A stretch of DNA of 64,000 nucleotides from Ministeria vibrans ATCC 50519 (lineage: Eukaryota; Protista; Filasterea), in the NCBI GenBank assembly GCA_943704425.1, contig CALSCP010002461.1, positions 33,823 through 97,822 of the forward strand. The letters are read 5' to 3'. The notes beneath the pieces are model-generated. The model made no database searches, was not told where the DNA came from, and saw nothing but the letters and a program-made list of their open reading frames with translations. Made by a program: the position numbers and the translations under genes. The stretch's first letter is position 1; each line of letters opens with the position of its first letter. Of this stretch, positions 2,718 through 52,753 are shown in pieces.

Positions 2718-2946
2718 CTTAACACACAACCAACAAGCGCCAGAGTCAGCGGCCACGTGCGAGGGGCAGGGCAGCAAGGCAGGGTGGATGGTGATGATGG
2801 GGGCGTGGCGGGTGGAGGGCAGGGAGTGCGTCGAGAGAGGCGCAACAGAAAGAGCAATGCGCATGAGACATCGCAGAGAGAAAAAGTGATTGTGCACTGC
2901 CATTTTTTAACTTTGTTTTTGTCTTTTTTGTTTTGTTTTTTATTTT

Positions 2947-2956
2947 NNNNNNNNNN
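2947..2956. other. Assembly gap (10 N)
   Basis: N run between the FARSB intron sequence and an OSTF1 intron. Confidence 1.
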
Positions 2957-3001
2957 CCCTCCCTCCGCGTGCGACCCCCTCCCCCGCCCCCTTCTCCGTA
3001 G

Positions 3002-3848
3002 TCCGATGAGCTTGCCTTTGACGAGGGCGATCTGCTGTACATCCTCGACAAGCCCGATGCCAGCTGGTACAAGGCCCGCTGCGGCTCCAGAGAAGGCCTC
3101 GTGCCCATCAACTACCGTACGGCAGACCACCGCTCTCTCCAACGCCTCTCTCTCTCTCTCTCGCTCTCTCTTTCTCTTTCTCTCTTTTTTTATTGTTTGT
3201 ATGTGAGAGTTTGTCGATTGCGCTTTCTCACTTTGTGCTCTCTCTCTCACACTCTCTCTCTGCGCAGTCGGCGAAAGCGCAGAAGAAATCGAAAACCCCC
3301 TGCATGATGCTGCTAAGCGAGGCAACATCAACTTCTTAAGAGACCTGCTGGCGACCAAGATGTCGCCCAACGCACTGGACAAGGTAGGGCGCACCCGTGG
3401 GCCGGGCGGGCCGGGCGACGCTTGCGTACTCACTGTCTCTGTCTGTCTGACTTCTTCCAGTCTGGGTCAACGCCGCTGCACTGGGCATCAACGGGCGGCC
3501 ACATTGAGTGTGTTGATGCGCTTCTTGAACTTCCGGTTGTTGCAGTGAACGTGCAGGTAAGAGCGAGATGTGTGTGTCTGAGTGTGTCGTTGACATTTTT
3601 TTCACTAGAACAAACTGGGCGACACACCATTGCATAATGCGTCGTGGAAGGGCCATGCGGACGTGGTGAAGGCACTGCTGGCGCATGAAGCGGATGCGTC
3701 GCTGACCAACAACGAAGGACAGGTACCGCTCGACCTGGCGCGCAATGCGGATGTGGGGTCGCTTCTGCAGACCGCCTCGGTCAGTGCTGCACAACTTGCT
3801 GAGTTTACAGAGCGGGAGGGGGATGAGGAAGACGAGGACAGTGACTAA
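3002..3848 (+). CDS. OSTF1: Osteoclast-stimulating factor 1-like (SH3 + ankyrin repeats), 5' exon missing
   Basis: SDELAFDEGDLLYILDKPDASWYKARCGSREGLVPINY (SH3), then NPLHDAAKRGNINFL, STPLHWASTGGH, GDTPLHNASWKGH (ankyrins) and acidic end DEEDEDSD. The first SH3 strand presumably lies in or beyond the gap. Confidence 0.9.
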
Positions 3849-4054
3849 GTAGTGAATCAACAACAATCGACAAAGTTATCACAAAGCACAAAGCGCAATA
3901 GATTAGAATGTCTCCGCTCCCTCTCGACACTCCTTTAGCTTAAAAAGTGGTTCTGAGCTGTTTGTGTTGTCGCTTTTCGTTTGTGATTGATAAGGAACAA
4001 AATAGAGAATCAAAAGCTATAATTCGATCACAGATCACAATTAATCATTTTGTG

Positions 4055-7000
4055 ATGATCTCTGTCTTGCTTGCCGCCCTTGTGGTGACTGCGGTACGTC
4101 GTGTGCGCACCCCCCCTCCCAGCTAACCCTGTCGGCTGTTGCCATGCAGAATGCCGCTCATCTTGACGTGCGCGTCAACCACGCGACGTTCGCCTTCGAC
4201 ATCATGCTCAACGGCGAGCGGTGGCTGACCAGCACGGGCGTGGACGTCCACTGCAACCGCAAGCAGTACGATTCGGTCGCAGGTACGCTCAAACTGTCGT
4301 CGCCCGTCACGACCTTCTCTGGCTCCGACAAACTCGGCTCATTCAACGCGACCACTGCCCAGTGGGCCGCCGACGACACCCTCTTCTCCGCCACCATCTT
4401 TGCCTACGCCGACAAGGCCGTTTTCCGCCAGCATTTCGTCAACGTATCCTTTTTTGTTATCGCTTGTTGTTATTGTTTTTTTTCATTTTCCGTTTCCGCT
4501 GTAGGGCGCCAGCGGAACGTCCACCGGCGACCGCGAGGGCGTCATGGCGTCGTTCCCACGCTTCCTGTTCGAGACGCCGGCTGCGCGGCGCGGCTACTTC
4601 GCCTACAACGACGATATGGTGGGCGATGCGCCGCACTTTGGCCAGTGGGACGAAAAGAGCAACCCGCCCACCGGCATCAAGGGCACCTCGCCCCTCACCA
4701 TGTTCAAGCAGGATCTCTCCGTCTCCTCCGTCATGAGGTACCTAAAAACAAAAACAACAAAAGGAAAAGCTCATTTTGTATGATACATATTATACATAAT
4801 AATTATTATAATTATAATAATTATAATAATATAATAATAATGCTCAATCATTATACTTACAAAAAGTTGATGGTAATAATAATAATTTATTTCTTGCAGT
4901 CCGTTTGCGAACTTTATGGTGGCTAATGCGGCTATTGTGAGCTCAAACGGCAACCGCACGCTGTGCTACGGCCCACTGGGCTCGCTCGAGAGCATCCCAG
5001 CGGCGTTCTCGCTTGAAACGATTGTCGTGGCGTTTGCGGGAGGCCCAACGGACGCAGTGCTGCACTGGGGCGACCAGATGCTCACGCAATACGAGAAGAC
5101 GCGCAAGGGACCCGACTTTGACCTGACGCTGACGTATCTCGGGTACAGCACGGACAACGGCGCTTACTACTACTACAACACGGAACCGGACATGAACTAT
5201 GAGGACACGCTGATTGCCGTCAAGAAGTACGCAGACAGCGAACACATTCCGTACAAGTACATTCTGCTTGATTCATGGTACGCTCACGAAACTGGAAAGA
5301 AGGGAGGGGGGGGGCAGTGAAAGAGAGAGAAAGACAAGAGAGAAGTTATGGGATGAGAGAGAAAGAGGGAGGGATTTGTTGTAGTGAGTGAGTGCGTCTG
5401 GGATTCTTGAGGCACTCACATTGTCTCCGCACTGCATTATTTAAAGGTGGTATCCTAAGGACTCGACTGGAGCAGTGACCGAGTGGGTGTCTATGCCCTC
5501 TGTGTTTCCCAATGGTCTCCAGTACCTGTACAACCAGACTGGTATGATGAGCGTTGAAAGAGAGAGAGAGAGTGTGTGTGTGTGTGTGACTCACCTCGTG
5601 CTTTTGTGTGTGTGTGTGTGTGTGTGGTTGCTCAGGATGGCCAGTGCAGGGTCACAACCGGTACTGGAGCAGCGAGACGGTCTACGCCAAGGCCAACGGA
5701 GGACCGTACAACTTCCACATTCAAAAGGCAGAAGGTGGTAAGCGTGCCATTGCCGCCCCTGACGACCAGATGTTCTGGGATTGGCTGCTTCAGAGCTCGA
5801 AAGAATGGGGTCTTGTCAACTATGAGCAGGATTGGTACGCATATACTGAAGTGCACTCGAGATTGCGTGGTTCAGTGTCTCACTTACGTGATTCACCTTT
5901 GACTCTGATGTAGGCTTGATGACGAGTACGACTGGTTCGACGGGTTCACGACGGACGCAACTTTAGCGCGACGATGGCTGATGCAGATGGGCACGGCAGC
6001 CAAGAGCAACGGCCTCACCATCCAGTACTGCATGTCTCACGTGCGCCATATGCTCCAGTCTATTGAGGTTTGCACTGCCACTACTCACTTGTCAGTGCCA
6101 CTCACTTGGTCCTGTAGATCCCGGCTGTGACGAATGCGCGTGCCTCTAGTGACTACCATCCTGGTAATCAGCAGTGGATCGTGGGTGTGACGTCTCTGCT
6201 CGCTCACGCCATTGGAGTTGCACCGTCCAAAGACAACTACTGGACCACCATGGTGCAGGTACAACACAAATATACACATATTCACAGTCAGTTACGCGCG
6301 CCATCCAACTCATTTTTTTCTTCTTCTCGCAGCCTGGCAGCAAGTGGGGTCCATTAACCAAGGAGCCGTACAACCGCCTAGAGAGCGCCATCAGCTCGCT
6401 GACCCGCGGTCCCGTTGCCCCCGCTGATAAGGTGGGTCACTCGGACACGGCTCTGATTGCCAAGCACTGCATGCCCGACGGACGTCTGCTGCGTCCCGAC
6501 CACCCGGCCTGGGTGCTTGACCAGTGGGTTCTCGACCAGTCGCTGCAGACAGGAAAGGGTCCTCAGGGCCAGCTCTACCACTCCGAGTCGCGTCTCGCGC
6601 AAGAGCACTACGCCTACGTCATTGCCGCCGAGCTCACCGCCGACTACTCTCTCGACCCGTCTCTCCTCGGCTACGAAGCCAACACGGCCCTCCTCGCCCT
6701 TGGTGTCAATGCCACCGCCGAGACCGCTCCCATCCGCGTCTCCTCTTCTGCACCCCTTCAGTTCTCTGTCTGTGGCAAACACGACTTTGAGCTCTTCACC
6801 CTCTCGCCCATTCTCTCCAACGGATGGTACCTCACTGCATCCAGCTGTGCATTTAGGATAACTTACTTTTTTTTTTCTTCTCTTTTCTCCTCCCTCTTCA
6901 GGGCCTTCTTGGGCGAGATCCAAAAGTGGGTGCGCGTGTCGAGCGACCGCTTCCGCGACCTCACCGAAACCAGCGAGGGCGTCGCAGTGGAGCTGGTGGG

Positions 7001-7127
7001 TGTGCCAGGAGAGACGGTTGAGCTCCTCTTCTTTGACTCCTCCTCCGACAAGTCCATGACTGTCAAGTGTGTCTTTGGCGCAGAGCACTCTCTCACTGCC
7101 AATGTGCCCGCCGGAACGTGCACTTGA
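4055..7127 (+). CDS. Secreted uncharacterised glycoside-hydrolase-like (TIM-barrel) protein, multi-exon
   Basis: Signal peptide MISVLLAALVVTA|NA; motifs YLGYSTDNGAYYYY, IPYKYILLDSWWY, VFPNGL, HNRYWS, WGLVNYEQDWL, QYCM, RASSDY resemble clan-D-like glycosidase folds. Family assignment is tentative. Confidence 0.65.
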
Positions 7128-7290
7128 GAAAAAGAAATAATATAAATATTTTTTTTTGGGTTTCCCACAATAATAATTTTAATTTTGGTTGGATTAGAGT
7201 TAGTATAATTATTTTTATGTACTTGCACTGCAATATCTTCTCTCTCACACATATCTCTCTATCTCTCTGCCATGCTCTCTCACTCTCCCG

Positions 7291-10200
7291 CTACAGTGTG
7301 GTTTCGTCAGCACCTCCAGTGGCAACAGCCTCCTCAGCACCGTCGGCCTCTCCGCCACCGACAGCAGTTGCATCACCCCCATCCACACCACCACCACCAT
7401 CGCCACCCGCCGGACCCATTGCCTCATTAAGCAACTGGTTCAGAACGAGCGTGAGCCATCGAATGCGTGGCAGGTCTTGTGCCCAGGGGCTTGCCAGAGC
7501 CGGTTGTACAGCCGCAAGGCAATCTTCCACCGTTGCAAACGCAACCATCAACGGCTCGTTGTAGCTCGCTCCCGCATACAAGATCCACAGAGCATTCAGA
7601 TCGGCCAAAAGCTGCTCGCTCGTCCGCAGAATGGTCATCGCAGGCAGCGTCAAACGCCACTCCTCTTCATCAGTCGGCACTCCATTCCGCTCGTTGCCAG
7701 TGGCATTGTTGTCTTCATTGTCGTCATTTTCGTCGTCGTCATCCTCCTCCTCCTCGGGTTGCAGTCGCTCTTCGTCATCGACACGGTGACCCTGACCAAA
7801 GAGATCCGCCAGACGAAGCAAACAGTTCAGCGCACTCGACATGACCTCCTCGGCAACACTGCCCAGCGAAGTGCACGTCTGCGACACCAACGGCGTCAGC
7901 GAGCGCAACCAAGTTGTGTTTATTTCGTTCAAAATCTTCTCAGAGCGCTCCCGCTCGAGCTGCATCTGGTCGTGGTCGTCGAGGGTGTGGCCCGTCACAA
8001 GAGCCATCCGCTCCGTCGAAACAGCACTCACAAAGAATTGCTCAAAGGCAGGCATGGCCACCAGCTCGTGAACGACCTGGTCCCAGTTGGCAACTAGCGG
8101 CGACTGACGCAACGCAATCAGCGGCGCCATTCGCTCCTCGAGCCCCACATGCAGTGACTCATTGAGCATGGCCGTCCATAGCTGTAGTGCCGGCTGGTGC
8201 AACTCTGCCACACAGGAGAAGGCATTCGAACACGCGCTCAACAGTAGGCTGTAGTACGAGCGGAACTGACGGTCCGTGACGGTGTCCACCTCAACGTCCT
8301 CGCCACGCGGAGCATTCAAAAAGGGTCGCGCAACGTGCATACACAACTGCGTGTAAGGACTGCTGAGCTCACGTCCACGCATTCGCTGCGAATCCATCGG
8401 TGCCGTACCCCACCGTCCCCCGGTGAGCTTCGCCTTAATCTGCAGGAATAACACTCGTGCATTGTCACGCTCCGCCTGCACTACCCCCTTGGCACCACCT
8501 TCATTTTCATCTTCCTCTTCGTCCTCTCCGTCTTCTTGGTCATCGTCATCGTCGTCGTCGTCATCATCGTCGTCTTCGTCTTCTTCCTCCTCATCCTCAT
8601 TCCGCATTCGGTACAGACGACGACGCTCACGGCGCGTCATGCCGTAACGCATAGCACGATAAAAACGCGTGTGTGCCTGTCGCGCGACCTCAATCACATC
8701 CCGCAACGCACTCGCATCCACCTGAATCATCACCTCCAGCAACTCCACAACGACTTCGCGCAATTCAGTCTGCGTGTGCGTGTTCAACACGCTCATTAGC
8801 GACTGAATGACAAATCGCCGGTGGTTCCAGTTCTTGGCGGTGTTGTCCAAATACACTAGACACAAAACGAATGTGAGAAACAACACAAAATAGGAGAAAA
8901 AAAATATATCAAATACCTTGCAATTGTTTAGGACGCTCCGTCATCAGCGTATTATTTGTCAACCGACCCAGCACTACAATTATGAGAAAATAAATAAAAT
9001 AAAATTTATTTATTATTATTATTATAATTTATTATTAGGAATGAGAATAAAACAAACTAATTATTACCATTGGTCATTGTCTGGATCACCCCAATAAGAC
9101 CATTGAGGGTCGCTGTATCACGACATGGGTCCTTCATCATCTGAACAATCGCTAATAGCGCCTTGTAGCCGCCCGAGCTGAAGAAGAGACCCGCCTCATC
9201 AATGCCAGTGACACACACCTACATTCACCAAAAATAATCGATTTAATTATTAGCATTGCTTTTTTCCTTCTCAATTTTTTTTATATATTTTTTGATTTTT
9301 TCAGTTTGGTGTACCTCCATGAGAGCAACGAATCGGGTTGTTTGGCGACTGACCCACTCGGCAGCAACCATCTTGGAAATGAGGTACTGGCGTACGGGCG
9401 CGGCGGTCTTGGCAAGGTAAAGAGCGAGTGCGTACATAGCGTCGGAAAGACCGGAGTAGACGCTGGTGAAAAGCAGGTAGTCAAAGGCCCAGTTGCAGTT
9501 GTTGTGCTCAACCCATGCGAGGGTGAAGGCCATGGACGACTCGCAGAGAATCAGGACAATCTTGTAGAAGCGCGACGACACGCGGTCGTTGTACTTGACG
9601 CTCTTTTCGGCGGTGTTGTGCGAGATGAACGAGCGAATGAGTCGATTGGTGTGCGCTGGTGATTCCGTGATGGGCTTGATAAACTCATCGAGTTTCTGCT
9701 CGGCGCACGACAACCACAAGAAGAGAAGCTCCGCCTTGTTCTCGTCCGACTCGTTCTGCTGGGCGTCAATGCATTCGTACAGACGCCACAGCTCATCAAA
9801 GTACTTGGCGCCAAACGAGCGACGCTCGTCGTTCGTGAGCAGCACCTTGCGCAACGAACGGAACAAATGCTGCATGTGAAAGATCGAGATGCGCTCGCCG
9901 CGCAGCGTGCCGTCCGTTGTGATCCACGGCATTCGCATTTGCGCCATCTTCTCGGCGAGCATCTGAATGAGCATGGAGCGCCACAGCGCATAGCGATGCG
10001 CTGCCGTCTTGAACCCGTGGCGCGTACGCACCTCCTCCACCGTGCCCACCGCATCATGTTTCTTGCACGCCGTCACGTACGCCGTCACAATCAGGTCAGC
10101 ACCACTGCGTGCCAGAATGCGGTCGGGCGCAACAAGCCACGGGAAGAGCCACTGATCGTGCAGCTTAAAAAGTGTTGCCGACGCCTCAACACTGTCCTCC

Positions 10201-13200
10201 ACAAGACGCTGCAGAATCTTCATCATCTCCTGCGCCAGCTTGCCCTGGTCCAAATTGACAGTTACCACACGAATGAGTTGCGCAACGGCCAGCTCCATAC
10301 GCGCCCCAACCACGTCGTCTACAGTGAACAGCAACCAGTGCAAAACCACGTCAACGAGCCACTTGAGGTTCTCGACATGCTCCTCATTGAGCGCCTCGGA
10401 CATGCCCGTCATGATGAGCTGCGACACTTCCAAGTTGTTGTGCGAGATGATCTGGAAGATCTTCTCAAGGTCCTTGTCACAGTACTGCTCCTTCAAGCAC
10501 TTGGTGAAAAATTCAAGAGTGCCACCAAAGAGCAGTTGCATCTCCAGCTCGGTCACCAGACGCGCATCGTCAGCACCGTTGCGCCACGCAGCGGCCGCCA
10601 CTGCCTCGGCCACAGTGCTCTCATGCGACTTGACCATCACCTTGGCTGGTGAGGCACTGGACGGCGCTGCGCCCTGCACAACACTAGACTGCTCGTCCTC
10701 CTCGACAAGGAAACCACCCGACTCGCTCACAACCACATGGCCCGTACCAGCACCACCGGCAGGAGACTTGATGGACGACGGCGCCGCACTGCTCTTGTTG
10801 TTGTTGTTTTTGCTGTCTGCTGTGGCTGTCTTGTCATCCATCGAGCTCGTGTCCATGTCGGTGCAGCCCGCGTCGTACTCGACGGTCGCACCGTCATGGT
10901 CACTCTCGTCGATGTTGTTGTTGTTGTTGTTGTTAGCGCAACTGTTCTCCGTCGCAATGGCCGTGTCAGCAGCGGCATTGGCCGAGCGGAACTGTTTGAT
11001 GAGTCGCTCATGCTTGAGCAACACCAATGCAAGCTCGCACACCACCTCAGCGATAGGCTTGAGTTCGACCGACGTGAACTTGTCGCCCATGACAGTCACC
11101 TTGGCCTGCTCCTCGGCAGTCCGCAGCGCGTACAATGGCGAATCTCGCTCAAGGAAAAAGTCGACAAGAATGCGCACGGCACCCAAGTGCAGCAGCGCAT
11201 ACTGCTCCTCAATGCCCTGCTGGTGCAACTTGTGAATAAGCAGCAGGAACTGATCGAGGGACCGCCAGTGCGGGGGAGCCTCGGGCACACAGGCAAGCAC
11301 AGCAGCCATGAAGCGCATGATGAGCGAGCGTGGTCGTGTCTTCACCACAATGCTCTTCGTCTCCTCGTCGCGCTCCTCCACCTGCTCCGTCTCGTGGTAC
11401 CAAGTGACCTCGGAGGGACGCACAAGCGACACGACGTGATTGACGAGCGACAAGAAGTGATCACGCACATCAGCCACCGAGCAATTGAGGAACATGTGTC
11501 GAATCCACGCACCATTCTCGTCCGTCATCATCTCGAGAAACCACAGACAAGCAGGCAAGTGGCGGGCATAGTACTTCTCGAGCATCGACACCCACTCGCC
11601 CAGTGCTAGAATGGTGCGGTCCTTACTCACAGCGAGTGTCTCCACCACGTAGTACGTCGCCAACTTGATCTTGTAGAGCATCACGTCAAAGGGACGACCG
11701 TCGTCCCACATAAGATCGCCTGAGGGCGGGCGCTCGTAGGCCGTCGAGATGTCCTTCATGCAGTCCTCCCCATCCGACACCACCTTGTCAAGGTTTGCTT
11801 GGGCACTTGCCGCGTCACCATCGTCACCAAATGCGGCGACGACCGCTGCCGAGATGGACTCGGGTGTGGGTGTGATAGAACTGCGCAACATGTCACGCAA
11901 GAAGCCCGAATAGGCACTGTCAAAGACGTGAGTGTCACGCCAGAAGGCCATATTCTGCTTCCAGATGGACTCGCGAATGGTGGGGTCCAGTGGTGCAGCT
12001 TGCTCGGGTGTCAAGTTAAGTGGATTCACTGTGTCATCGACGGACATGGTCGCCTCATCGGACGGGACAGTGGCAGGTGCAGGAGTGTCGTCAATGCGCT
12101 CGTAAAACAACATGTAGGCACTGTAAGGCTTGGGTGCCCACTGTGAGACCATTTTTTGCTGCATCTGATCCCACTGTTCAAGCGACTGTACTCCGCCATA
12201 GCACTGGTCGGCAATAAAGTCAGCGTCAAACTCCTCGACAGTGGAGTCATTGAACTGGTACCACGACAAAGGTTGACCTGGAAAGCGCGGCTCGCGCTCT
12301 CGCACAAACGAGTAGTAGTGACCCGAGTCAGCAGTGCCAGTGTGCACCAGAATACCCGACAGCTTAAAGCGGGTGTCGCCCTTGGCGACGGGCAGGGCGG
12401 CAAGAGCGGCTGCGGTGGTCTGGGCACGGGCAACGGCGACGGGGTCGGGCTCGCCCTGTGCAGAACCCACAGCATGCGCAGCGGCACTTGCGGCCGCCTC
12501 AGCGTCACGTCGTTGGATGCCGACGAGCGTGTACGGTTCCATGTCGAGCACTTCAGGAAACTCAATGTGGTCGTTGATCTTGTAGCGACGCAGCGTGTCA
12601 AAGTCAAACTCGAAGCGCTTCAAGTGGACAATGAGGGTGCGCGGAAGAGTCTGCACACAGGCACGCTTGAGTGCGGCCACCTTGCGGTCACACTTGGAGC
12701 AGTGGTACTTGTTGTCTCCATCGAGCATTTCACCCTCGCAGTAGAGCGCCAGGGACTCCAGCAGTGACTTCTTGTTCTTGACGTCGCACTGAATGGCAAA
12801 GTAGGGCTCTTCGCGTTCGCTGATATGATCGCAATCACGCGAAATGACTTGCTGCACAAGTTTGCCACCAAAATGATACTTGAAAAGGTCTCGACGGGAC
12901 GGCTCGATGGCATTTTCAAGGCGATCAAACAGCATGTTGAAGAACTCGTCCACGTCCATTTGCACCGCACAGTTCATGGGTTGCCCGTCGTAATCTTTGA
13001 CGGCATTGCAAAAAGAACGGGTGTCGTAGGCGCGCTTCTCGCTCTCAAGCAGATGCGAATAGAGGCGTTGCAGCTGGTAGAGCAGGGAGTCACCCTTGTC
13101 CTCGTCGGGATTGGCTGGCTTGGCAGCGAGGAGGCCGCGTCGGAAGGCGGGTACCATAAAGAACTGTTGCAGGAGGGAGTTCATGTAGCAGGTGGCACCC

Positions 13201-16200
13201 TGGTTTTGAAGGCCAACGTATCCCGAGGAGGCGCGCTGCTGGAACTGCACCGAGTAGTACCAGCCGACGGAGCGCATGGCACGCGAGTGGTGCGCACACA
13301 GACGAGAGTAGAGCAGTCGGAAGTTGTCGGGAGAACCGACGATGAGCGTCTTGAGCAGACTGAAGGCGGCGCGACGCGTCGTCTCGTGCTTGCAGACGGG
13401 CGGACCGGACGGGCCGTGGTTCTCGACAGTGGGAATGTCAAAGAGACATCGATCGAAGAGGTCGTCAAGAACACGCAGTTGCTGCCCGACGTGGACCTTT
13501 GATGAGGTGGGTGAGCGACGCAAAAGCGTCTCGAGGAAGTAGAAGAGGCCACAGAGAACGTGGTCCTGTACGGTCTGATCATTGCGCTCGAGTACAGGTC
13601 GTCGACGAATGGCTGCCGCAGCCTGCTGACAGAGACGCTGGGACTCTTGCGGGTCGGCGTGCTCGGCGACAAGGTCGCACAGCAGGGAGAAGTACTGCTC
13701 ACACGAGTCGGCAGCCGTACCTTCCTCCACGAGAGGTAGAAAGTCAATGAGCTGCCGCGACAGCACGTTGACCATGTCGAGCATGCGCTGGTTCACAGCG
13801 GTGGTGGTGGTCGCCGACGAATCAGCGGGATCCCCCTGTCCAGCGTCGCCCTCCACGACCACCATGGCGGCAGCAATGGGAAGACGTTTCCAAAGCGCAC
13901 GCAGCGCCCACGATACTTGCATGCGAGTGTCTTCGTCGCCGGACAACAAGACGGCATGAAGCCACTGGGCAAGCTTGGGCTGTGCGCAGAAGGCCTGGAG
14001 TTCGCGCACTGAGCTGAGGCACAGACCCACAATGAGAGCCATAGTCTGACCACACACACCCTGTTGGCCAAGCTCGCCCAGATTGACAACGGTTGAGTCG
14101 ACCGCACCGTTGGTGTCATCGTCGTCGTCGGGGACGGGGGAAGGGAGCAAGGGACCAATCTGGGGTCCATCCACAACATCAAGGTCCATCGGCAACACAT
14201 CGTTCGAGTCGCTCACCTGCCGTTGGTGCAGCACAGTGGCTTTGACAGCACGATCGGGCAGCGACAACATTGAAGCAAGGTTCATTTCGGCGACACTCAT
14301 CAAAAGGTGCACAAAGGGCTCGTCACCACTGAGGCTTGACAGGGCACAGCCAGGGCGAAGCGGCAGCTCCTGAACGGTGCGTGCCGAAGAGGCATCGCGG
14401 TCGTCAGCGTAGTCAGCGCGAAACGAGAACGTGCCAAGCAGCTTGAGGAGGAGGCGAAGGCACGAGCGACGCAACTGGCGATCAATGGTACCCATGGAAG
14501 AACCGGCGGCGGACGTAAGACGCACAGCCTCACCAGTGCGCAACAAATGTACCAGATGGTGTACACCACCACGCTCCTCGAAGCGTGTACGCCAAGCGGA
14601 ACACACGCTGTTCGTCTCGCCCTTGGCCTGCGCCAGACTCTCGACAATTTGCAGACAGTACAGCAACTTGAAGGTGCTGGCACCATCGAGGAGAGCCGAC
14701 CAGCCCGTAGTGGGGTCTTCGGGGTTGTCGGGGAGCGCACGCAGACGCTCGAGCATGGCACGGTTGGTGGGCAGCTGCATGATAATTTCCCAGGCGACCT
14801 GGGCGAGCCCGTCGCGTGGATGACGCAGAAGTGCAAACAACTGGTCAAAGTGATTCGCTTGCGAGAGCATTCGCATTGGAATGGCCGACGGTGGCTCGTC
14901 AATGACCATTTCGGACATCGTTGGCTCGGTGGGAATGTCGCCGTCCTTGACGCCATCTGCGACGGGTGGTGTTGTCGGGGGTGTATTGTCGTCGGACATG
15001 GACGTATCCTTGGTCACGGGACGCACAACGCCCGCCGAAGTCACCTCCATGACATCGCGCGAGGCGGCCGTCGTCGAGGGCGACAGGTACATGGTTTGAA
15101 TGACCTCCTCGTCGACGACACCCACCTCGGCAAGGGTGCGCGTCTCCCACTCGCGCATGCAGTCCTTGCCCTTGCAAACAAAGCGAAAGGAACCGTTGGT
15201 ACGGTTCATGCGACGACGCAACTCGATCGAGGCTTGTGCGAGCGCATCACCAAAAGTGTCGTTACTGTAGAACTCGAGTTTGTGACGCACCATGCTGGTC
15301 GAAGTGAGTGAGAAGACAAGGCGAATGGGGTTGCCACGAGCGCGTGCACCGTGGCGCACCGTATTAGACTCGGCGAGCTCACGAGCATGCTTGTGCGAAA
15401 AGGTCTCGAGGAAGAGACGGATGAGCTTGAGCGAGCGTTCAATGAAGTAGCTGTGTTCCTGCGCGGCGGCCGGGTCGCTCTGTTCAGCGGCCCAGGCGGC
15501 CGCCAGGCGACGCATGCTTTCTTCGACAAACTCTTTGCGTCGCTCGCGCACCTGATCGCTGTTGAAGTTGTCGGGTGCCAGATTGAGATACAGTTGAATG
15601 AGCAGTGTGGACGAGTCTTTGGCGACAGTCTCGTCGGTGGCCGACAGAGCAAACATCCAGATTTGCTCGAGACCAATAAGATTGGGCGAGAGGACCAACG
15701 GCTCGCCGCCGTAGTGGTCAGGCTCGCGGTAGTGATTGGCACGACGATTGACACGGATGAACATCTTCTGAACAAGCCTGTAGGTGACACCAATGACATG
15801 GCGGAAATCCATGTTGGGCACACAGACGCGGAAGAGATGCTCGAGAACATCGGTCGACAGGGCATTGGCGCGACCCGACAGCTGCGACTCGAACCAAAGG
15901 ACGCATTTCTCTTGCTCCTCCTCGGTGAACGCGTCGATGACACACGAGTTCCAGAGTGCCTCGGCGTTGCTTGGCGTGAGCTGCACGGGAAACTCGAGGG
16001 TGGATTGACCAATAATGAAGGCGAGAAACTCGAGACGACCAGCAAGATGAACGCCATAGTAATCGCGGCAGATGAGTGGGTGCATCTTGGCCAGAGCAAC
16101 ACGAGCACTGCGATCTGTCTCACGACCATTGAGCATGCCAATGCGGAAGAATTCGGGCAGTGCGTGTTCCTTGAAGTGCACCAGGTCCTCAAAGAGCAAG

Positions 16201-18370
16201 TCTAGAAAGTTGTTGGCCTTGAGAAAGGACGCAATGACCTCGGCAACGGTGGGCACACGGTCGGGGTTATCAAGGTCCAGGTGGGTGTCAAGAGCAGCAT
16301 CGGCAGCAGAAGTATTAGCAGCAGCGGTAGCTGCAGTAGCTGCTGCATCGAGGGACGAAGAGGAGGGCGATGGGGCACCGCCGGAGGAGGCGGTGACATT
16401 TCGCAAGCGCTGTTGTGTGTGTGCCGACGTGACGGGGAAGGAGCTGAAGATTTTCATCATTACCAGGAGCGAGTCGTAGACGGTGGTGTGACGACGGACA
16501 TTGTCGAGGCAACGTTGGAGAAAGAGGGTGGCGAAGGGACGAGCACCCCTCAGCTCAAGGGCATTGGAAAGCATGCGACGTGCGTGGTGCGCGAGGTCCG
16601 AAGAGACCGCCGTGTCATCTTGAACGAGAGTCCAAAAGATGTCCAGTCCATAGGAGTGGTTTGATACGGGCTGGTCGAGACCGGGCGAAAAGGCGTCTGT
16701 GGTGATGCGATTGACAAGCTGAAGCGTCTGCAGATCGTACGACTCGGTAGTGAGCTTGGCAATGCGGTTGTAGAAAAGATGATCCACTTGATCGGGTTGT
16801 AAGTCACCCGGCAGTTCGCCCAGCACCGAAAAGAGCACATGTTGATACGACTCGTGCTGTCCCTACATAAAACAAATGAGTGAGTGAGTGAGTGAGTGAG
16901 TGTGTATGAAATGTGAACTAAGCAATTTTTCCGATACCTCCATGGAACCCCAAACCAAATCGAGATCGGCGGTGGTCAGCGAATTGGTGGAGGCAAGAAG
17001 ACGAAGAATGTCAACGGAGCGACGCACCACTTCGGTGTGAACGTGGTCACGGAACATGTGTGTGAGAAGATCGTTGTCACGCACAAACTGGACCAGGTGT
17101 TGGGGTGTGAGCCAGAAGACGGGAGGCTCGCGTGCGGGCTGTTGCGGTTGCATTGGACGATGATGAGGGTTCTGCAGTTGATACTGGCGCTGACGTGCGT
17201 CGGCGCGTGCAATGTCTTGGGCGATGTAGACATTTTGGATGTGTTCGCGAAACTCGCTCATTGCAAAGACACGCTTGTCCATGATGGAGGAGCGGAAACA
17301 GCGGTTAGCAAGTTCCAGGGCGAATCGCTCGGCGGTCTCGGCGGCCTCATTAAAAGGCAAGGTAGAATGGACGAGGTCGGTGAAGACGAGACGCACGCGA
17401 GCGAGCGACTGCTTGTCCTCGACCTTGAGTTGGTCCTCGGAGAGCGCGAGAATGAAGGAGGAGACGAGAGGCACAATCTTATGGGCCAAGTTGGTGGCAA
17501 AGGCCGAGTCGAGGTGATTGGCAGGGCGAGACAAGAGGAGCAAGAGGGCGCGAAGGCTGCCGAGCGAGAGGAAGTGTTTCTTGTTGGCGACCGAGAGGCG
17601 AAGGCGTTCGACGGCATTGGCAAAGCCATGAAGGGTGTGAAAGACGTTGATGTTGTCGAGGAGAAAGGAAGGGGTGTCGTCGTTGGCATTCGGGGTGCGG
17701 GTGACAACGCGCAACTTTGAGCCATTGGCGGCGGTGGAGGAGTGCGAGTAGTGAGGGCCCGAATGGTGCAAGTAGAAGGCATTGTACTTGTCGAAGAGGA
17801 GGCGCGACGTGATCTCGTAAAGGAGGGGGAAGTCGCATGTCTTGATCGACTGTGCAACAAAGGCAACGGCAGCTTGGAAAAGATCCTGAACGGCGATTGC
17901 CGCCTGGTCGGTGTGCTGAGGGTTGCGCTTGATGAGTGCGACCAGACAGGTCGGAAGGCCCTCATTGAGAAAGTATGAATGGGCGTCGGAAAGAGGCGCC
18001 TGGGGGTTGAAGTTTTTGGTGACCTCGTTAAACATGGCGCGCACAGTGTTGCAAGCGAGGAGAGCATCGTCATCTACAGCAATAATACAATAAAATTAGA
18101 TTGTTGTTGTCGACGAGACGCAATCTCCTTCTTCTTCTTCTTCTTCTCTCTCTGTCTCACCTCGCTTGAGAATCTCGCTGCAATTGAAAACGCGCTCTTT
18201 GCATTCGTCAAGGGCTTGTCGAGCTGCTGCCTGAGCTGCATCTTGCATATCTGTCAAGCGGGACGAACAAGATGGAAAGTAGTGAGAGGTTGAGGAACAT
18301 TGAGAGAATAATATCTCACGCGCCAGTCGGGCGCGACTGTTGGGTGGGGGGGGAGGGGAGGGCGGGACAT
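7291..18370 (-). CDS. USP34: Very large ubiquitin-specific protease, USP34-like (USP9X/24/34 group)
   Basis: Cys box GYVGLQNQGATCYMNSLLQQ (about 13170-13225), QMDVDEFF, HLKRFEFD, His box HTGTADSGHYYSF (about 12305-12345), SAYMLFYER. The C-terminal NCNWAFDYL region resembles USP34. Start is either Met 18248 or 18370. Confidence 0.85.
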
Positions 18371-18775
18371 CGTTGGCTCATACTGAGACAGGCAATCGAG
18401 GAGGGGTGGGGTGCAAGGGAATGAGAGGGAAGAGAGCGAAAAAATAAAATAAAAAATATAATAATGACTGTCATTTGGACAGAAAGAATGAGAATGAGCA
18501 GCTGTTGAGTGAGTGGACGGAGAAGAATGCAATGCGGGGGAAGGGTTGGGGGGTGGGGTGAATGAAGGGGCGCAGAGGACGAGGAAGGAGAGGCAAAGGA
18601 GAGTTGATGTTCGTGAAACGGTCGACTGGAGTCGTGTCGACACGCTCGCACGCGCATCGTGGGGGGCGCCAGGGGGCAGCAGACGGTGGGAGAAACCGCA
18701 CTGGGGCATTCGAGATGGACGCGGCAGGACGCCACAGCGCAGCGCGAGAGAACAGGAGACGGACGAAGATCATCA

Positions 18776-18810
<35 letters not shown>

Positions 18811-18849
18811 AAAAGGGAAAGGAAAAGAAAAAAATGAGTGCGCGCTGAC

Positions 18850-19024
18850 CTTTCTTGGTCTTCTTGTCGGCAGCAGCGGCAGCGGCAGCGACAGCAGCGG
18901 GATCAACCACATCGTCGAGTTCAATGCCAAACTGGAAACAGAGCTCTTCCACTTCAGGATTGGTCATGGCCGGACGTCCAATGGCTGCCAGGAAGGGCGT
19001 CTTGTCGACAGCTACAGTTGGCAT
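18850..19024 (-). CDS. FARSB: PheRS beta first coding exon, remote from the rest of the gene
   Basis: MPTVAVDKTPFLAAIGRPAMTNPEVEELCFQFGIELDD is the canonical eukaryotic PheRS beta N-terminus. The 175-nt exon ends in phase 1 at AAA G|GTCAG. Confidence 0.9.
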
Positions 19025-40593: not shown

Positions 40594-43500
40594 ATGCTGC
40601 TCGCACTGGCGGTGTGTCTCGTTGCGTTTACAGCGACGCAGGCGCAGCAGGCACCCCAGCCGGCGTGTAATGTGTGTCGCTGTCGATCATTGGAGTCATC
40701 GCCAACGAAACTTGAGCTGGACTGTACGAGCCGCGGGATCACCACCATCCAGGTATCTCTGTTTGCTGCACACACACCCTCCCCTGAGCTGCGCTGACAC
40801 CACAGCTCTCTGTAGCAACTTTCGTTTGCTCACTTGGATGTGCAGAGTCTCAACCTCAGTTTGAATGCCATCACATATGTGGGCGCAGCGGCCTTTGCGA
40901 GCATGCCTGGCCTCACGACACTCGACTTGACCTTCAACGCCCTCCGCGCAGTCGACGCCGACGCCTTTTCCAACACATCGTTGACAACACTGAATCTGTC
41001 GCAGAACACAAACCTCGCACGGCTCCCATCGCGCGTGTTTGCCTCCCTGCCCGACCTGACGTCTCTCAACATGAGCTACACCAACATACAGCAGCTGCCG
41101 CCCCACCTGTTTGAGCACAACCTCAATCTCACAGTGTTTGTTATGCTCGACGAGAGCGGGAGTGGTCTCGCTCAGCTGCCGCCCGACACCCTCTTCTCCA
41201 TGAACCGTCAGCTGGAAGTTCTCAAGCTCGCAATGTGGATTAAAATGCCCGAACGTAACGCGACGTTATTCTTTACAAACTTGCCGTCGCTGCGCTACCT
41301 GTACGTGTGGGGCCTGAACCTTCCGTACATGTCGTCGGCCGACTTTGCCGGTCTGCCCTCCCTCACTCAGCTAGAGTTACCCTTCTTGATACTGTTCATC
41401 AACACCCCACTGGACCTATTTGAGCCTCTAAACAGCACTCTGCGCGTCCTCAATATGTTTAACAGTAACCTGCTGTACAACTCGTCGTCGCTTGGCGAAG
41501 TGTACGGCGTCATCAATCCCGCACTCTTTGCACCTCTCCGTCTGCTCACCTCCCTCTACTTCTCATGCAACGTCATCATCAGCACACAGCCTCTCGAGAA
41601 CCCTTCTCTCGTACATCTCGGCTTTGCGGTGTATGACTCCATCACCAACACAAGCACCGTCCTGAGCGCGCGTCTCACCGCTCTCACGAACCTCACCATC
41701 AGCGAGACCACCTTCACAGAGCCCAGCCTCGACTTCTCCATGCTCCCCTCCCTCCACTCCCTCATTCTCTCTGATATCTCCCTCTCCAGCGTGTACGCTG
41801 TCTCTCTCTTCTCCAACTCCTCCCTCGCCACCCTCCACCATCTCCGCATCTTCTCCTGTCTCGACTGCCCCACCAACACCATCCCTCCTCTTCTCCTTCG
41901 CGACACTCACTCCCTCGAAGTCTTCAACTTCCAACAGTCCACTGCTACCCTTCTTCCCCCTTTTTTCTTCGACTCTTGTCCCCATCTTCGCTCCGTCGGT
42001 GTCCAGGGCAACTTTCTTTCCGTCCTTCCAGGTCTCAACACCCAATCTACCCCAATCGCCAATCGTCGGTTAATCTCACCTTTTGTGTTTGTTTCCTTTC
42101 GTTTTTCTTTGCACTATCATCATAGATAATCTCTTTCGGTTTAATTCCGAACTCATTCTTTTCGATGCGGGTACCTTTAACATTTTTATCTGTACTGAAA
42201 TGACTCGCACTGATTGTTTTTTTTGTTCGTGTGCCTATGTGGGTTTAGCGTATAATAATATTCAAACCATTCCCGACAACCTTTTCCAGTACACAAAGTC
42301 CATTGAGAGCATTACTCTGAAGAGTTTTTTTGGATCTCATTTAAGTGAAGGTATTTCCCAACACATTTTTTTTGTTTTTGTTTTTGTTTTTGCGGACCTC
42401 TCACATGTCCAGCCTATCACGTTCTCACCATTATCTCTCTTTCCTCTTTTGTTTGCTTTCTCTTCTCACACGTACACGTTTCTTTCTCTCAGATCTGTTC
42501 CAGGGTCTGACCAACCTGACTTTACTTGACCTCAGCTTCTGCAACAACCTGATTCCTCCCCCTCGTCTCTTTCACAACCTTCACCGTCTTCTCCTTCTCA
42601 ATATCGATCAGACTTTCTTTAACAACTCCTGGCTTGACTCTCTTCCTTTTCGCGATCTTTCCTCTCTGCAAGCCCTTGCCATGTCTTCTAGCCGTGCATC
42701 AGTTCTCGGTTAGTCAGTCACTCACTTTCCCGTCAACACTAATGTATTTTGCATTGCTGTAGGTCCGGTGGGGCTCTTTGACGCAACTACACTCTCCAGT
42801 CTCACGATCTCTAATGCTGGTTTTACGACTGTTGTTCCGGGGGTATTTGGTCCCTTAGGACCAAGTGAGAAGCACTGCAAAGATCACTGAAGAGTGGTGA
42901 TTGTTTTGATTTTTTTTTGTTTTTTCTTCATGTAGCTCTAACATCCTTGTGCGTATCAAGTTGTCAGATTTCCTCACTTGAACCGTTTACCTTTGCCGAA
43001 CTCATCTTACTTGAAAATCTTGATTTATCAGGTACAAAACATAATAAAAATAAGAAAATAAATAAGAAAATAAATAAGAATAATAATAATTTTATTATTT
43101 TTTCAGACAATGCACTGACTGAAATTGAAAGTGGACTGTTCGCACCACTGGTGTCTCTGCAGACAGTCAGTCTGGACAACAATCACATCCGGCAGTTAGG
43201 GTCTGTGTTTGGCTCTGCTCCCTCGTCCATTCCACTGACTTCCTTCTCTGCTACTTTCAACAATATTTCCTTTGTTGACCAGTCGCTCTTTATTCCCGTA
43301 ACGACAATGACATAATTAATCTCCCCAATCAAATTGCTCTATGTGTGTTCTTGACTGATAACCTGGTCACAAAAATAATACGTCTTAATTTTAGACGAGT
43401 TCTATTGAGTCGATTCTGCTCAAATCGAATCGTATCAACTCATTCAACTTTATCGGAAGCAGTCCGATCATTCTTGATTTGAGTTTCAACGAACTGACGA

Positions 43501-50086: not shown

Positions 50087-51066
50087 CATGTTGTTCCGAT
50101 TTTGTTTTAGTTGTTGCATGCGGTGCTGGAGATGGACGAGTCGTCAAAGGCGCAGTTTGCGCGCGAGGTGGACTTTCTGCGAAGTCTCAAACATGCGAAT
50201 CTGGTGCACTTTTATGGAACGGGAGTGTATGAGGATGCGACACCGTTTATTCTGCTGGAGTTTGTTGAACGGGGGTCGCTCAGGAGTGTGTTGGATGGGG
50301 AAGATGAACTGGACTGGCCGTTGCGAGTGCGCTTTGCACTGGACATTGCGCGTGGGATGCGCCATTTGCACTCGCGCACGCCGCCTCTGTTGCACCGAGA
50401 CCTCAAGAGCGAGAATTGTCTTGTGGACGCAAAGTGGACTGTCAAGGTAGGGAGGGATTGTGCAAGTGGAGTGTGGCTGAGCGTTTTCCATTCAGGTGTC
50501 CGACTTTGGGTCAAGTCAGCTTGCGACAGCGGCGGGTGCGACACGGCCGATTCGTCTGCCTGAGTCGCGCACAGGCAGTCGCGCGTCGTCCACTCGCACT
50601 GCGTCACGCCACACTCGTGAGATGAGTTTGATTGCGTCGGGAGTGAGTGAGGCGAATCCCGGGTCGCTTTTGTGGATGGCGCCGGAGATTTTGAATGGCG
50701 AGCGGTTTATGCGTGCGTCGGACGTGTACTCGTTTGCGATTGTGCTCTGGGAGATTATGACGTAAAAGCAAAACAAAACAGAACAGAAAGCAAAAAGAAA
50801 TAGCCATAATGTTTTGTCATTTGGGACATGCTATGAGTCACTAAACATTGTGGTGTAGACGGGATATTCCATTTTCGGCTGAGCCATCGCTTTCGGCGAT
50901 CACGAGCACTGTGTGCTCGGGCGGCCGACCCGCTGTGGCCACACACACGGACGCACCACCGGCGTACGTTGCCTGTATGCGACACTGTTGGACGCACGCT
51001 CCCCTCTCGGCGCGCCCGTCCTTTGCGGAAATTGTGCCCGCACTGTTGACCATCGAGGAAGAGTGA
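45953..51066 (+). CDS. LRR receptor-like kinase (TKL group), copy B
   Basis: Same exon structure and domains as copy A; kinase exons offset by 5301 bp. Confidence 0.92.
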
Positions 51067-51275
51067 NNNNNNNNNNNNNNNNNNNNNNNNNNNNNNNNNN
51101 NNNNNNNNNNNNNNNNNNNNNNNNNNNNNNNNNNNNNNNNNNNNNNNNNNNNNNNNNNNNNNNACCACCGGCGTACGTTGCCTGTATGCGACACTGTTGG
51201 ACGCACGCTCCCCTCTCGGCGCGCCCGTCCTTTGCGGAAATTGTGCCCGCACTGTTGACCATCGAGGAAGAGTGA
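51067..51275. other. Assembly gap followed by a duplicate of the kinase 3' end
   Basis: N run at 51067-51163; 51164-51275 repeats about 50955-51066. Confidence 0.95.

Positions 51276-52717: not shown

Positions 52718-52753
<36 letters not shown>

Follow-up and report, generated by a model that had tools for sequence, protein, structure and literature searches.

In de Bruijn assembly, a homopolymer longer than the word size is reduced to a shared node, and a negative gap between contigs appears as a minimal stretch of N. Separated exons are also encountered as genuine arrangements. In metazoan host/nested pairs, host and nested genes interfere transcriptionally (PMC11694760, PMC3192792), while in Giardia the two halves of a trans-spliced gene bear a specific 26-nt complementary sequence (PMC8494341). 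The window analysed here, a 64,000-nt stretch of the Ministeria vibrans assembly, carries a gene for the beta subunit of cytosolic phenylalanyl-tRNA synthetase (FARSB), the first exon of which is separated from the remaining exons by 16 kb containing three other genes. This separation is, with high probability, a scaffolding artefact.

Exons, domains and copies of FARSB

FARSB is encoded on the reverse strand. Exon 1 (18850-19024) begins with the ATG at 19024, and its 175 nt comprise 58 codons plus one base, giving a phase 1 end that is followed by a GT donor at 18849-18848. Exon 2 (2377-2717), preceded by an AG at 2719-2718, starts in phase 1 and encodes the C-terminal half of the B1 domain and the beginning of B3_4; exon 3 (1163-2311) encodes B3_4, B5 and the CLM domain, and exon 4 (879-1100) includes the stop codon. 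The position and phase of exon 1 and the phase 1 acceptor, as proposed in the initial annotation, were both recovered, and the junction of the two exons reads as claimed there, KKTKK-G-KAPKEKKSKSDAS...DIVFKIDIPANRYDL, with the B1 domain being completed by both sides.

Exons 1-4 combined contain 628 codons and no internal stop. A Pfam profile search run exon by exon placed positions 1-46 of the 83 of PhetRS_B1 in exon 1 (E 2e-10) and positions 50-82 in exon 2 (E 5.6e-12). Exon 3 matched B3_4, B5 and positions 1-155 of tRNA_synthFbeta, of which positions 164-212 followed in exon 4. Read in a single frame, the order B1, B3_4, B5 and catalytic-like (CLM) domain is that of eukaryotic cytosolic PheRS beta, and the closest relatives of the exons are eukaryotic FARSB sequences with 52-63% identity. 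A single PhetRS_B1 domain is cut by 16 kb, an arrangement far beyond chance. A separate start for exons 2-4 was considered and rejected, as exon 2 has no Met and an in-frame TAA lies directly upstream of it; an ATG-led ORF in the intron sequence preceding exon 2 was likewise discarded as an alternative start, being out of frame with that exon.

Exon 1 is present in one copy in the assembly, together with two divergent relatives of 55-57% identity; neither a second near-identical exon 1 nor a contig bridging it to exon 2 was found there. Additional FARSB copies occur in the assembly, type B on contig C1793 and type B' on contig C1463, which may represent other organisms in the sample, or paralogues. 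In the compact copy on C1793, the linker between the B1 halves is likewise interrupted by a phase-1 intron, of 270 nt, and the intron of the copy on C1463 is ∼290 nt long. The exon 1 sequences of types B and B' diverge by ∼16%, and both types are found in part on tiny contigs. As far as sequence can tell, this suggests an origin from other organisms rather than paralogy. GC3 values are similar among the FARSB and FARSA copies (0.77 vs 0.73). No identical protein emerged from a large protein search, in which the type B copy in an ENA metagenome was the best match (63%), and JGI metagenome contigs yielded no relative above 54%. The initial annotation had argued that FARSB is essential and that a complete mRNA must therefore exist; given the further copies on C1793 and C1463, this argument is weaker than it was stated.

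Boundaries and gene content of the intervening block

In the sense of FARSB, exon 1 is followed by a 5' half-intron of 41 nt (18809-18849, reverse strand), which is pyrimidine-rich and opens with a GTCAG donor, and then by a run of 32 A (T32 in FARSB sense) at 18777-18808, the proposed false contig junction. The block beyond it, proposed to be misplaced, extends over 15.8 kb (2957-18776) up to a 10-N scaffold gap at 2947-2956. On the other side of the gap lies a contig of 3,766 nt, referred to as contig Z, which is enclosed between two gaps and holds FARSB exons 2-4. Its 3' half-intron (2718-2946, reverse strand; 229 nt) displays a CTGAC branch-point-like motif, a pyrimidine-rich tract and an AAG acceptor. 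The N10 is the sole gap and the A32 the sole run of at least 15 nt in the span between the FARSB exons, which agrees with the earlier remark that a gap at 2947 and a poly-A run at about 18777-18808 bracket the block. The A32 begins 41 nt past the donor of exon 1 and the N10 lies 229 nt ahead of the acceptor of exon 2, so that the half-introns sum to 73 + 229 = 302 nt.

Exon 1 and the block are joined without any N. Neither boundary of the block is bridged by a gene or a unique overlap, whereas two further gaps are bridged, one of 59 N by the exons of BBS5 and one of 97 N by an overlap of 112 nt. The 5' exons of BBS5 occupy 1-630 of the window on the reverse strand, and the gene continues leftwards over the N59 gap, located 820-878 nt left of the window; BBL5 positions 202-240 are matched on the window side of this gap and positions 241-262 on its far side. 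The continuity of the BBS5 exons anchors contig Z to its left neighbour, the anchorage being on the left only. The N97 gap (51067-51163) has an exact 112-nt duplication on both flanks, which puts its size off by ∼209 nt. Other gaps in the assembly sit in homopolymers or microsatellites, and gap sizes are unreliable. When the flanks of the block (18300-18900 and 2560-2946) were searched in the assembly, they proved to be unique save for a 73-nt match to contig C1090; the distal 62 nt of the 3' half-intron (2885-2946) recur without a mismatch at the beginning of an intron on that contig. An introner family as the source of this repeat at the end of contig Z was rejected, as only two copies exist.

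The block contains the three genes named in the initial annotation, a same-strand USP34 and an antisense pair formed by OSTF1 and a glycosidase-like gene. The OSTF1-like gene (3002-3848, forward strand) consists of an SH3 exon from 3002 and ankyrin exons up to 3848, and its first coding exon is missing. The SH3 exon (3002-3108) covers positions 11-47 of the 48 of SH3_1, has no in-frame Met and carries a stop codon directly upstream. An exon for SH3_1 positions 1-10 was absent from both strands of the window, and no contig with it was found, the exon being too short for a genome-wide search. The possibility that exon 1 sits on a small contig swapped with the block was also tried and rejected, since no OSTF1 exon is present to the right of exon 1. 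The glycosidase-like gene (∼4055-7127, forward strand) has no Pfam match. The USP34-type giant deubiquitinase (18246-7291, reverse strand; UCH domain, E 4e-51) is a multi-exon gene of ∼11 kb on the same strand as FARSB, with its first ATG exon at 18246-18160 and its last exon ending at 7291. Its first acceptor (18250) is 600 nt from the donor of FARSB exon 1, and the phases of the two are compatible. USP34 and OSTF1 are each single-copy in the assembly.

Recurrence of the anatomy at other genes

Two other split genes, a FAS1-domain gene on contig C1730 and NAT10 on contig C324, are built like FARSB. In the direction of transcription, the 5' exon and a short half-intron lead to a homopolymer of 32 nt; behind it come the foreign block, a gap of 8-10 N and a second half-intron, which runs into the 3' exon. 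The FAS1-domain gene has an A32 at 12679-12710, followed by a block of 4.85 kb, in which PLK1 and an NMNAT-like gene are located, and then by N9 and A25. The Fasciclin profile stops at position 118 of 123 directly ahead of this block, and within the block only positions 1-70 of the 121 of the cathepsin C exclusion domain are present. Here, too, a gene is cut short where the block meets the gap. In NAT10, a T32 at 41215-41246 is followed by a 2.74-kb block and then by N8 and T29; positions 2-55 of the helicase profile lie ahead of the block and positions 60-176 beyond it, and the intron is of the GTCAG donor type, as in the 5' half-intron of FARSB. The minimal gap at the other block boundary is thus N10 in FARSB, N9 on C1730 and N8 on C324. 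After removal of the blocks, Pfam profiles continue across each of the three junctions, leaving introns of 302 nt in FARSB, ∼117 nt in the FAS1-domain gene and at least 101 nt in NAT10. The recurrence of a 32-nt run with a short gap at two other genes is most likely an assembler signature, not biology. The Pfam matches of both aconitase genes are compact.

Among the 12 A/T runs of at least 20 nt in the 206 kb of genome examined, 5 are 31-32 nt long, a pile-up suggestive of an assembler with k=31. A 49-nt A run is, however, present elsewhere in the same scaffold; not every long run has therefore collapsed, which counts against the artefact. FARSB also matches the pattern less neatly than the other two genes. 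The contig behind the gap opens with the same homopolymer in the FAS1-domain gene (A25) and in NAT10 (T29), whereas contig Z opens with an A-rich tract and not with a T run.

Origin of the separation and comparison with known systems

The artefact is favoured as both boundaries of the block are weak points of the assembly, and as OSTF1, the gene at its gap end, is truncated, with neither a start codon nor SH3_1 positions 1-10. It is further favoured by the total of the half-introns, 302 nt, which is a normal intron size close to the 270 nt on C1793, by the same anatomy at two other split genes, by the small size and one-sided anchorage of contig Z, and by the additional scaffold fault known from the N97 gap with its 112-nt duplication. 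Directly observed are the anatomy and its recurrence, the gene cut off at the block end and the unreliability of the gaps. The word size of the assembler and the order of the scaffolding events are what we infer from the sequence. The word would be ∼31 nt, homopolymers of that length or longer could not be read through, and all long runs would collapse to one shared node. At this node, an unrelated 15.8-kb contig (USP34 ... OSTF1) that also starts behind a long run may have been attached to the contig that terminates with FARSB exon 1. The true continuation would be the 3.8-kb contig with exons 2-4, whose link to exon 1 was presumably retained, and which would then have been placed after the intruder, behind a minimal 10-N gap. 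The true link between exon 1 and exon 2 is most likely an ordinary phase-1 intron of ∼300 nt with a long poly-T tract. Further observations run counter to the artefact: exon 1 passes into the block without N, no other place for the block was found in the assembly, nor a bridging contig or a second copy of its flanks, and both FARSB parts are collinear on the same strand, as a real insertion would also leave them.

A real nested arrangement of FARSB around the block is unlikely. In its plainest form, which we regard as very unlikely, FARSB would be cis-spliced over a 16.1-kb intron hosting the three genes. In its favour, neither FARSB part is damaged, the two are collinear and their splice signals are usable, exon 1 runs into the block without N, the assembly gives no other placement, and the size of the N10 is unreliable enough to conceal the missing OSTF1 exon. 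Yet the genome is compact (∼30 Mb) and other introns here measure just tens to hundreds of nt, whereas this one would enclose a gene of 11 kb on the same strand, which has several acceptors and an end of its own, the first acceptor being 600 nt away and in phase; a true 16-kb intron with such a multi-exon gene would be hard to splice. The incompleteness of OSTF1 at the gap and the recurrence of the run and the short gap at two other genes also speak against it. The same recurrent, assembler-like anatomy weighs on the idea that the FARSB halves are transcribed apart and joined by spliceosomal trans-splicing, as in Giardia Hsp90 and dynein, which is extremely improbable. Exon 1 does adjoin a short divergent promoter region common to the GH28 gene, exons 2-4 and OSTF1 are arranged head to head, each of the separate pieces offers a canonical site (GT and AG, respectively), and the U32 behind exon 1 pairs with the A-rich far end of the 3' half-intron at 23 of 26 positions by A-U and G-U pairs only. 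Duplex energies and complementary-run scans, however, revealed no specific complementarity between the half-introns, but low-complexity pairing only (U32 against the A-rich tract and an 11-nt run of T/A only); among the 276 tiles of the window, the 3' half-intron comes 246th in pairing with the 5' half, and a U-run/A-rich pair would be equally expected if the two were neighbours in one short intron.

It is highly unlikely that this FARSB copy is not expressed from its four exons, either because it was broken recently and type B on C1793 supplies the function, or because a second exon 1 lies in the N10 gap. The additional copies of FARSB and FARSA, similar in GC3, and the uncertain true size of the N10 are compatible with this reading, but all four exons are intact and conserved, the divergence of B and B' and their tiny contigs suggest other organisms, USP34 and OSTF1 have no second copy, and no near-identical second exon 1 occurs in the assembly. 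We consider it quite improbable that the anatomy is both real and recurrent, with multi-gene blocks residing in homopolymer-bearing introns of FARSB, NAT10 and the FAS1-domain gene, and the exons being joined by very long cis-splicing, by trans-splicing or through 5' exons shared with the first gene of the block. If this were true, an essential synthetase spliced across three genes in a compact genome, and recurring elsewhere, would constitute a remarkable mode of gene expression. Among the three readings left side by side in the initial annotation, misassembly, there called a serious alternative, has gained from the weak boundaries, the truncated OSTF1, the normal intron sum and the recurrence, while a real 16-kb intron and trans-splicing did not find support.

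Gene models on this assembly would be wrong wherever such misjoins occur. The predicted FARSB would miss its first 58 residues, or its exon 1 would become an in-frame extension of USP34, and the OSTF1 model would lose its start. A/T runs of 31-32 nt are best treated as unverified contig joins, the place of the displaced true neighbour being indicated by short runs of N at a distance of a few kb. The rule of a run plus a short N gap offers a simple way to find and undo many split-gene oddities before they are read as biology.

As compared to known systems, the locus resembles metazoan host/nested pairs (PMC11694760, PMC3192792) in having complete genes on both strands between two exons. The known cases, however, belong to genomes with long introns, whereas the FARSB genome is compact, its host gene would be a housekeeping synthetase, and one of the nested genes would be a multi-exon gene of 11 kb on the strand of the host. 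Like the trans-spliced genes of Giardia (Hsp90 and dynein chains; PMC8494341, PMC4006730, PMC5224939), FARSB is divided in two, its first part being followed by a GT and its second preceded by a branch point, a pyrimidine tract and an AG; unlike them, its halves pair through a U run and an A-rich tract only, and lie 16 kb apart on one strand rather than hundreds of kb. A misjoin in a short-read de Bruijn assembly differs from the locus in the 49-nt run inside a contig and in the FARSB contig standing behind the gap without the same homopolymer. The two are alike in the word-like 32-nt run paired with an N8-N10 gap, the truncated gene, the normal intron that is restored and the occurrence at several loci, and another gap in the window holds an unmerged 112-nt overlap.

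The FARSB gene model and its interruption

The combined four exons of FARSB, all on the minus strand, gave 628 codons with no internal stop. Exon 1 (19024-18850; 175 nt, with ATG at 19024) ends in phase 1 and is followed by GT, and exon 2 (2717-2377) continues in phase 1 behind an AG at 2719-2718; exons 3 and 4 occupy 2311-1163 and 1100-879. When the exons were queried singly against Pfam, positions 1-46 of PhetRS_B1 (83 positions) were found in exon 1 and positions 50-82 in exon 2, and B3_4, B5 and a catalytic-like domain were found in exons 3 and 4. A single PhetRS_B1 domain is interrupted by 16,132 nt in an assembly of 29.7 Mb and 2,860 scaffolds with small introns, which confirms the split gene described in the initial annotation. 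The contig is not of human origin. The encoded protein shares just 52-55% identity with animal, Syssomonas (EukProt entry Colp12) and Capsaspora proteins.

The three other genes claimed between exons 1 and 2 were also recovered: an OSTF1-like gene with SH3 and ankyrin exons (3002-3848, plus strand), a plus-strand glycosidase-like gene with no Pfam match, and, on the minus strand like FARSB itself, a giant USP34/USP9X-type deubiquitinase. No second copy of USP34 or OSTF1 was found in the assembly. The USP34 gene is 11 kb long, and its first acceptor at 18250 lies 600 nt from the phase-1 donor of exon 1 (18850) and in frame with it (G + AT, then ATG), so that gene predictors may emit a spurious FARSB-USP34 fusion. 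OSTF1, to the right of the N10 gap, starts at position 11 of the SH3_1 profile, with a stop immediately upstream and no in-frame Met, and no exon encoding the start codon and the first strand is present anywhere in the window. The missing start implies either that considerably more than 100 nt are concealed in the N10 gap, or that contig Z, the small contig carrying FARSB exons 2-4, is not truly adjacent to the sequence on the right of that gap.

Recurrence at the FAS1 and NAT10 loci

Comparable interruptions were found on two other contigs of the assembly. The FAS1-domain gene of C1730 has an exon ending at 12725 (...NGVVYVIND; Fasciclin profile reaching 118 of 123), followed by 14 nt, A32, a 4.85-kb block, N9, A25, 40 nt and a further FAS1 exon (VLLPEN). 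In NAT10 on C324, the exon before the block ends with ...GFDALDMQ (helicase profile 2-55) and is followed by 26 nt, T32, a 2.74-kb block, N8, T29, 43 nt and an exon resuming the profile at position 60. The FARSB order, in gene sense, is exon, 41 nt, T32 (18777-18808), block (2957-18776), N10 (2947-2956), 229 nt and exon. All three loci have a run of exactly 32 nt and a gap of 8-10 N, and block removal restores a normal short intron at each. The first block gene has the host orientation and opens with an acceptor site at FARSB and FAS1, and apparently also at NAT10. The gap-side block end cuts a gene in both cases examined, namely OSTF1 at FARSB and cathepsin C on C1730, where only positions 1-70 of 121 of the exclusion domain are present beside PLK1 and an NMNAT-like gene. 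Among 12 A/T runs of at least 20 nt in 206 kb of genome, five measure 31 or 32 nt, as against about 7% of runs expected by our estimate for two adjacent lengths if runs were even over 20-49 nt.

An acceptor lies 2-7 nt before the start codon in USP34 (18246-18250) and PLK1 (C1730, about 12615-12625), each preceded by an intron-like tract containing a long homopolymer; these could belong to 5' UTR introns or, less likely, be spliced-leader acceptor sites. C1730 also carries a T31 run (16246-16276) and an N10 gap (18994-19003), which bracket a 2.7-kb segment carrying an eIF2-gamma-like gene; immediately past the gap begins an AlkB-like exon. No split gene could be shown around this stretch (16246-19003), which may be a further displaced contig. 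A T31 run at 52720-52750 of the window lies about 27 nt past an ABC-transporter stop codon (minus strand), and on the misassembly reading would count as one more unverified join between contigs.

Probable misassembly and the quality of contig joins

In a de Bruijn assembler using 31-nt words, homopolymers beyond the word length share one node, from which an entering contig can exit into any other locus, and a single pass through a longer homopolymer produces a pile-up of run lengths at 31-32 nt. We infer three steps at FARSB from the assembled sequence: the exon 1 contig would have fused at the shared node to a contig that begins, upstream of USP34, past a different long run; contig Z would still have been linked to exon 1 through read pairs, and would hence have been placed beyond the inserted contig, separated from it by a minimal gap. 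A single assembly error very probably accounts for the split, as it explains the collinear same-strand FARSB parts, the N10 gap with the truncated OSTF1, the half-intron sum of 302 nt (73 nt after exon 1 including the homopolymer, 229 nt before exon 2) and the recurrence at other genes. Against it stand a 49-nt run within another part of scaffold C2461, and the A-rich beginning of contig Z, whereas the FAS1 and NAT10 contigs begin with the same homopolymer as the block boundary. It also counts against this reading that neither a bridging contig nor an alternative home for the block was found in the assembly.

The window makes up the final 64 kb of scaffold C2461, which measures 97,822 nt. Contig Z is only 3,766 nt long and is bounded by gaps of N59 (left) and N10 (right). 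BBS5 continues across N59 (Pfam BBL5 202-240 on one side, 241-262 on the other), indicating that the left join is reliable; the gap lies in a BBS5 intron (C2461:32820-33120) and has a long (AAT)n microsatellite on each side. No gene can be traced in this way across N10. The final 62 nt of contig Z (2885-2946) recur without a mismatch on C1090 (C1090:6760-6833), where they comprise one exon base and the initial 61 nt of an 82-nt intron in an unrelated gene rich in Glu and Lys; the whole assembly has just these two copies. Contig Z thus terminates in a repeat, which might be a duplicated intron element of small size or else a repeat at which the contig broke off. The 112 nt on either side of the N97 gap (51067-51163), which falls within the 3' end of a kinase-like gene, form an exact direct duplication (50955-51066 and 51164-51275); the two contigs overlap and were left unmerged, so that the gap and one of the copies are artefactual. 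Homopolymers and microsatellites house other short gaps, and gap sizes of the assembly are not trustworthy.

The FARSB split is most likely not real biology. In practical terms it yields a guideline for handling this assembly: A/T runs of 31-32 nt should be treated as unverified joins, and the true displaced neighbour should be sought past a short run of N at a distance of a few kb.

Compact FARSB copies and alternative readings

A second FARSB (type B; C1793:35652-39806), whose identity to the window copy is 64% over exon 3 and 57% over exon 1, has exons 1 and 2 separated by a 270-nt phase-1 intron within the same linker. Its variant B' is dispersed over C1463 (C1463:6069-9221) and three tiny contigs, with about 84% identity to type B in exon 1; this difference of about 16% suggests that the sample contained other organisms, in preference to an origin as paralogues. 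Type B and a FARSA-like gene are arranged head to head, and several PheRS-alpha core matches occur (C1463, C1667, C2558, C1704, C945), which would reflect either a mixture of related organisms in the assembly or a duplication of PheRS. The type B open frame is also present, with one residue different from C1793, on a 1.5-kb metagenome contig (ENA ERZ23497388 scaffold_9249; sample SAMN09406007), indicating that the type B organism or a close one was sampled independently.

The initial annotation had weighed a nested intron, trans-splicing and misassembly, of which the evidence supports the last. A real cis-spliced 16-kb intron is very improbable, as splicing must bypass all acceptors of the same-strand USP34, the nearest being in phase and close to the exon 1 donor. 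That the window copy is broken and rescued by type B, or that a second exon 1 is concealed in the gap, is highly unlikely in view of the intact FARSB exons, the single copies of USP34 and OSTF1, and the divergence among type B variants, which points to other organisms. Trans-splicing of two FARSB halves, as in Giardia, is extremely unlikely; among 276 tiles of the window compared for pairing with the 5' half, the 3' half-intron came 246th. Giardia trans-splicing requires a specific 26-nt complement (PMC8494341), whereas pairing at FARSB is limited to the U32 tract with an A-rich tract (23/26).
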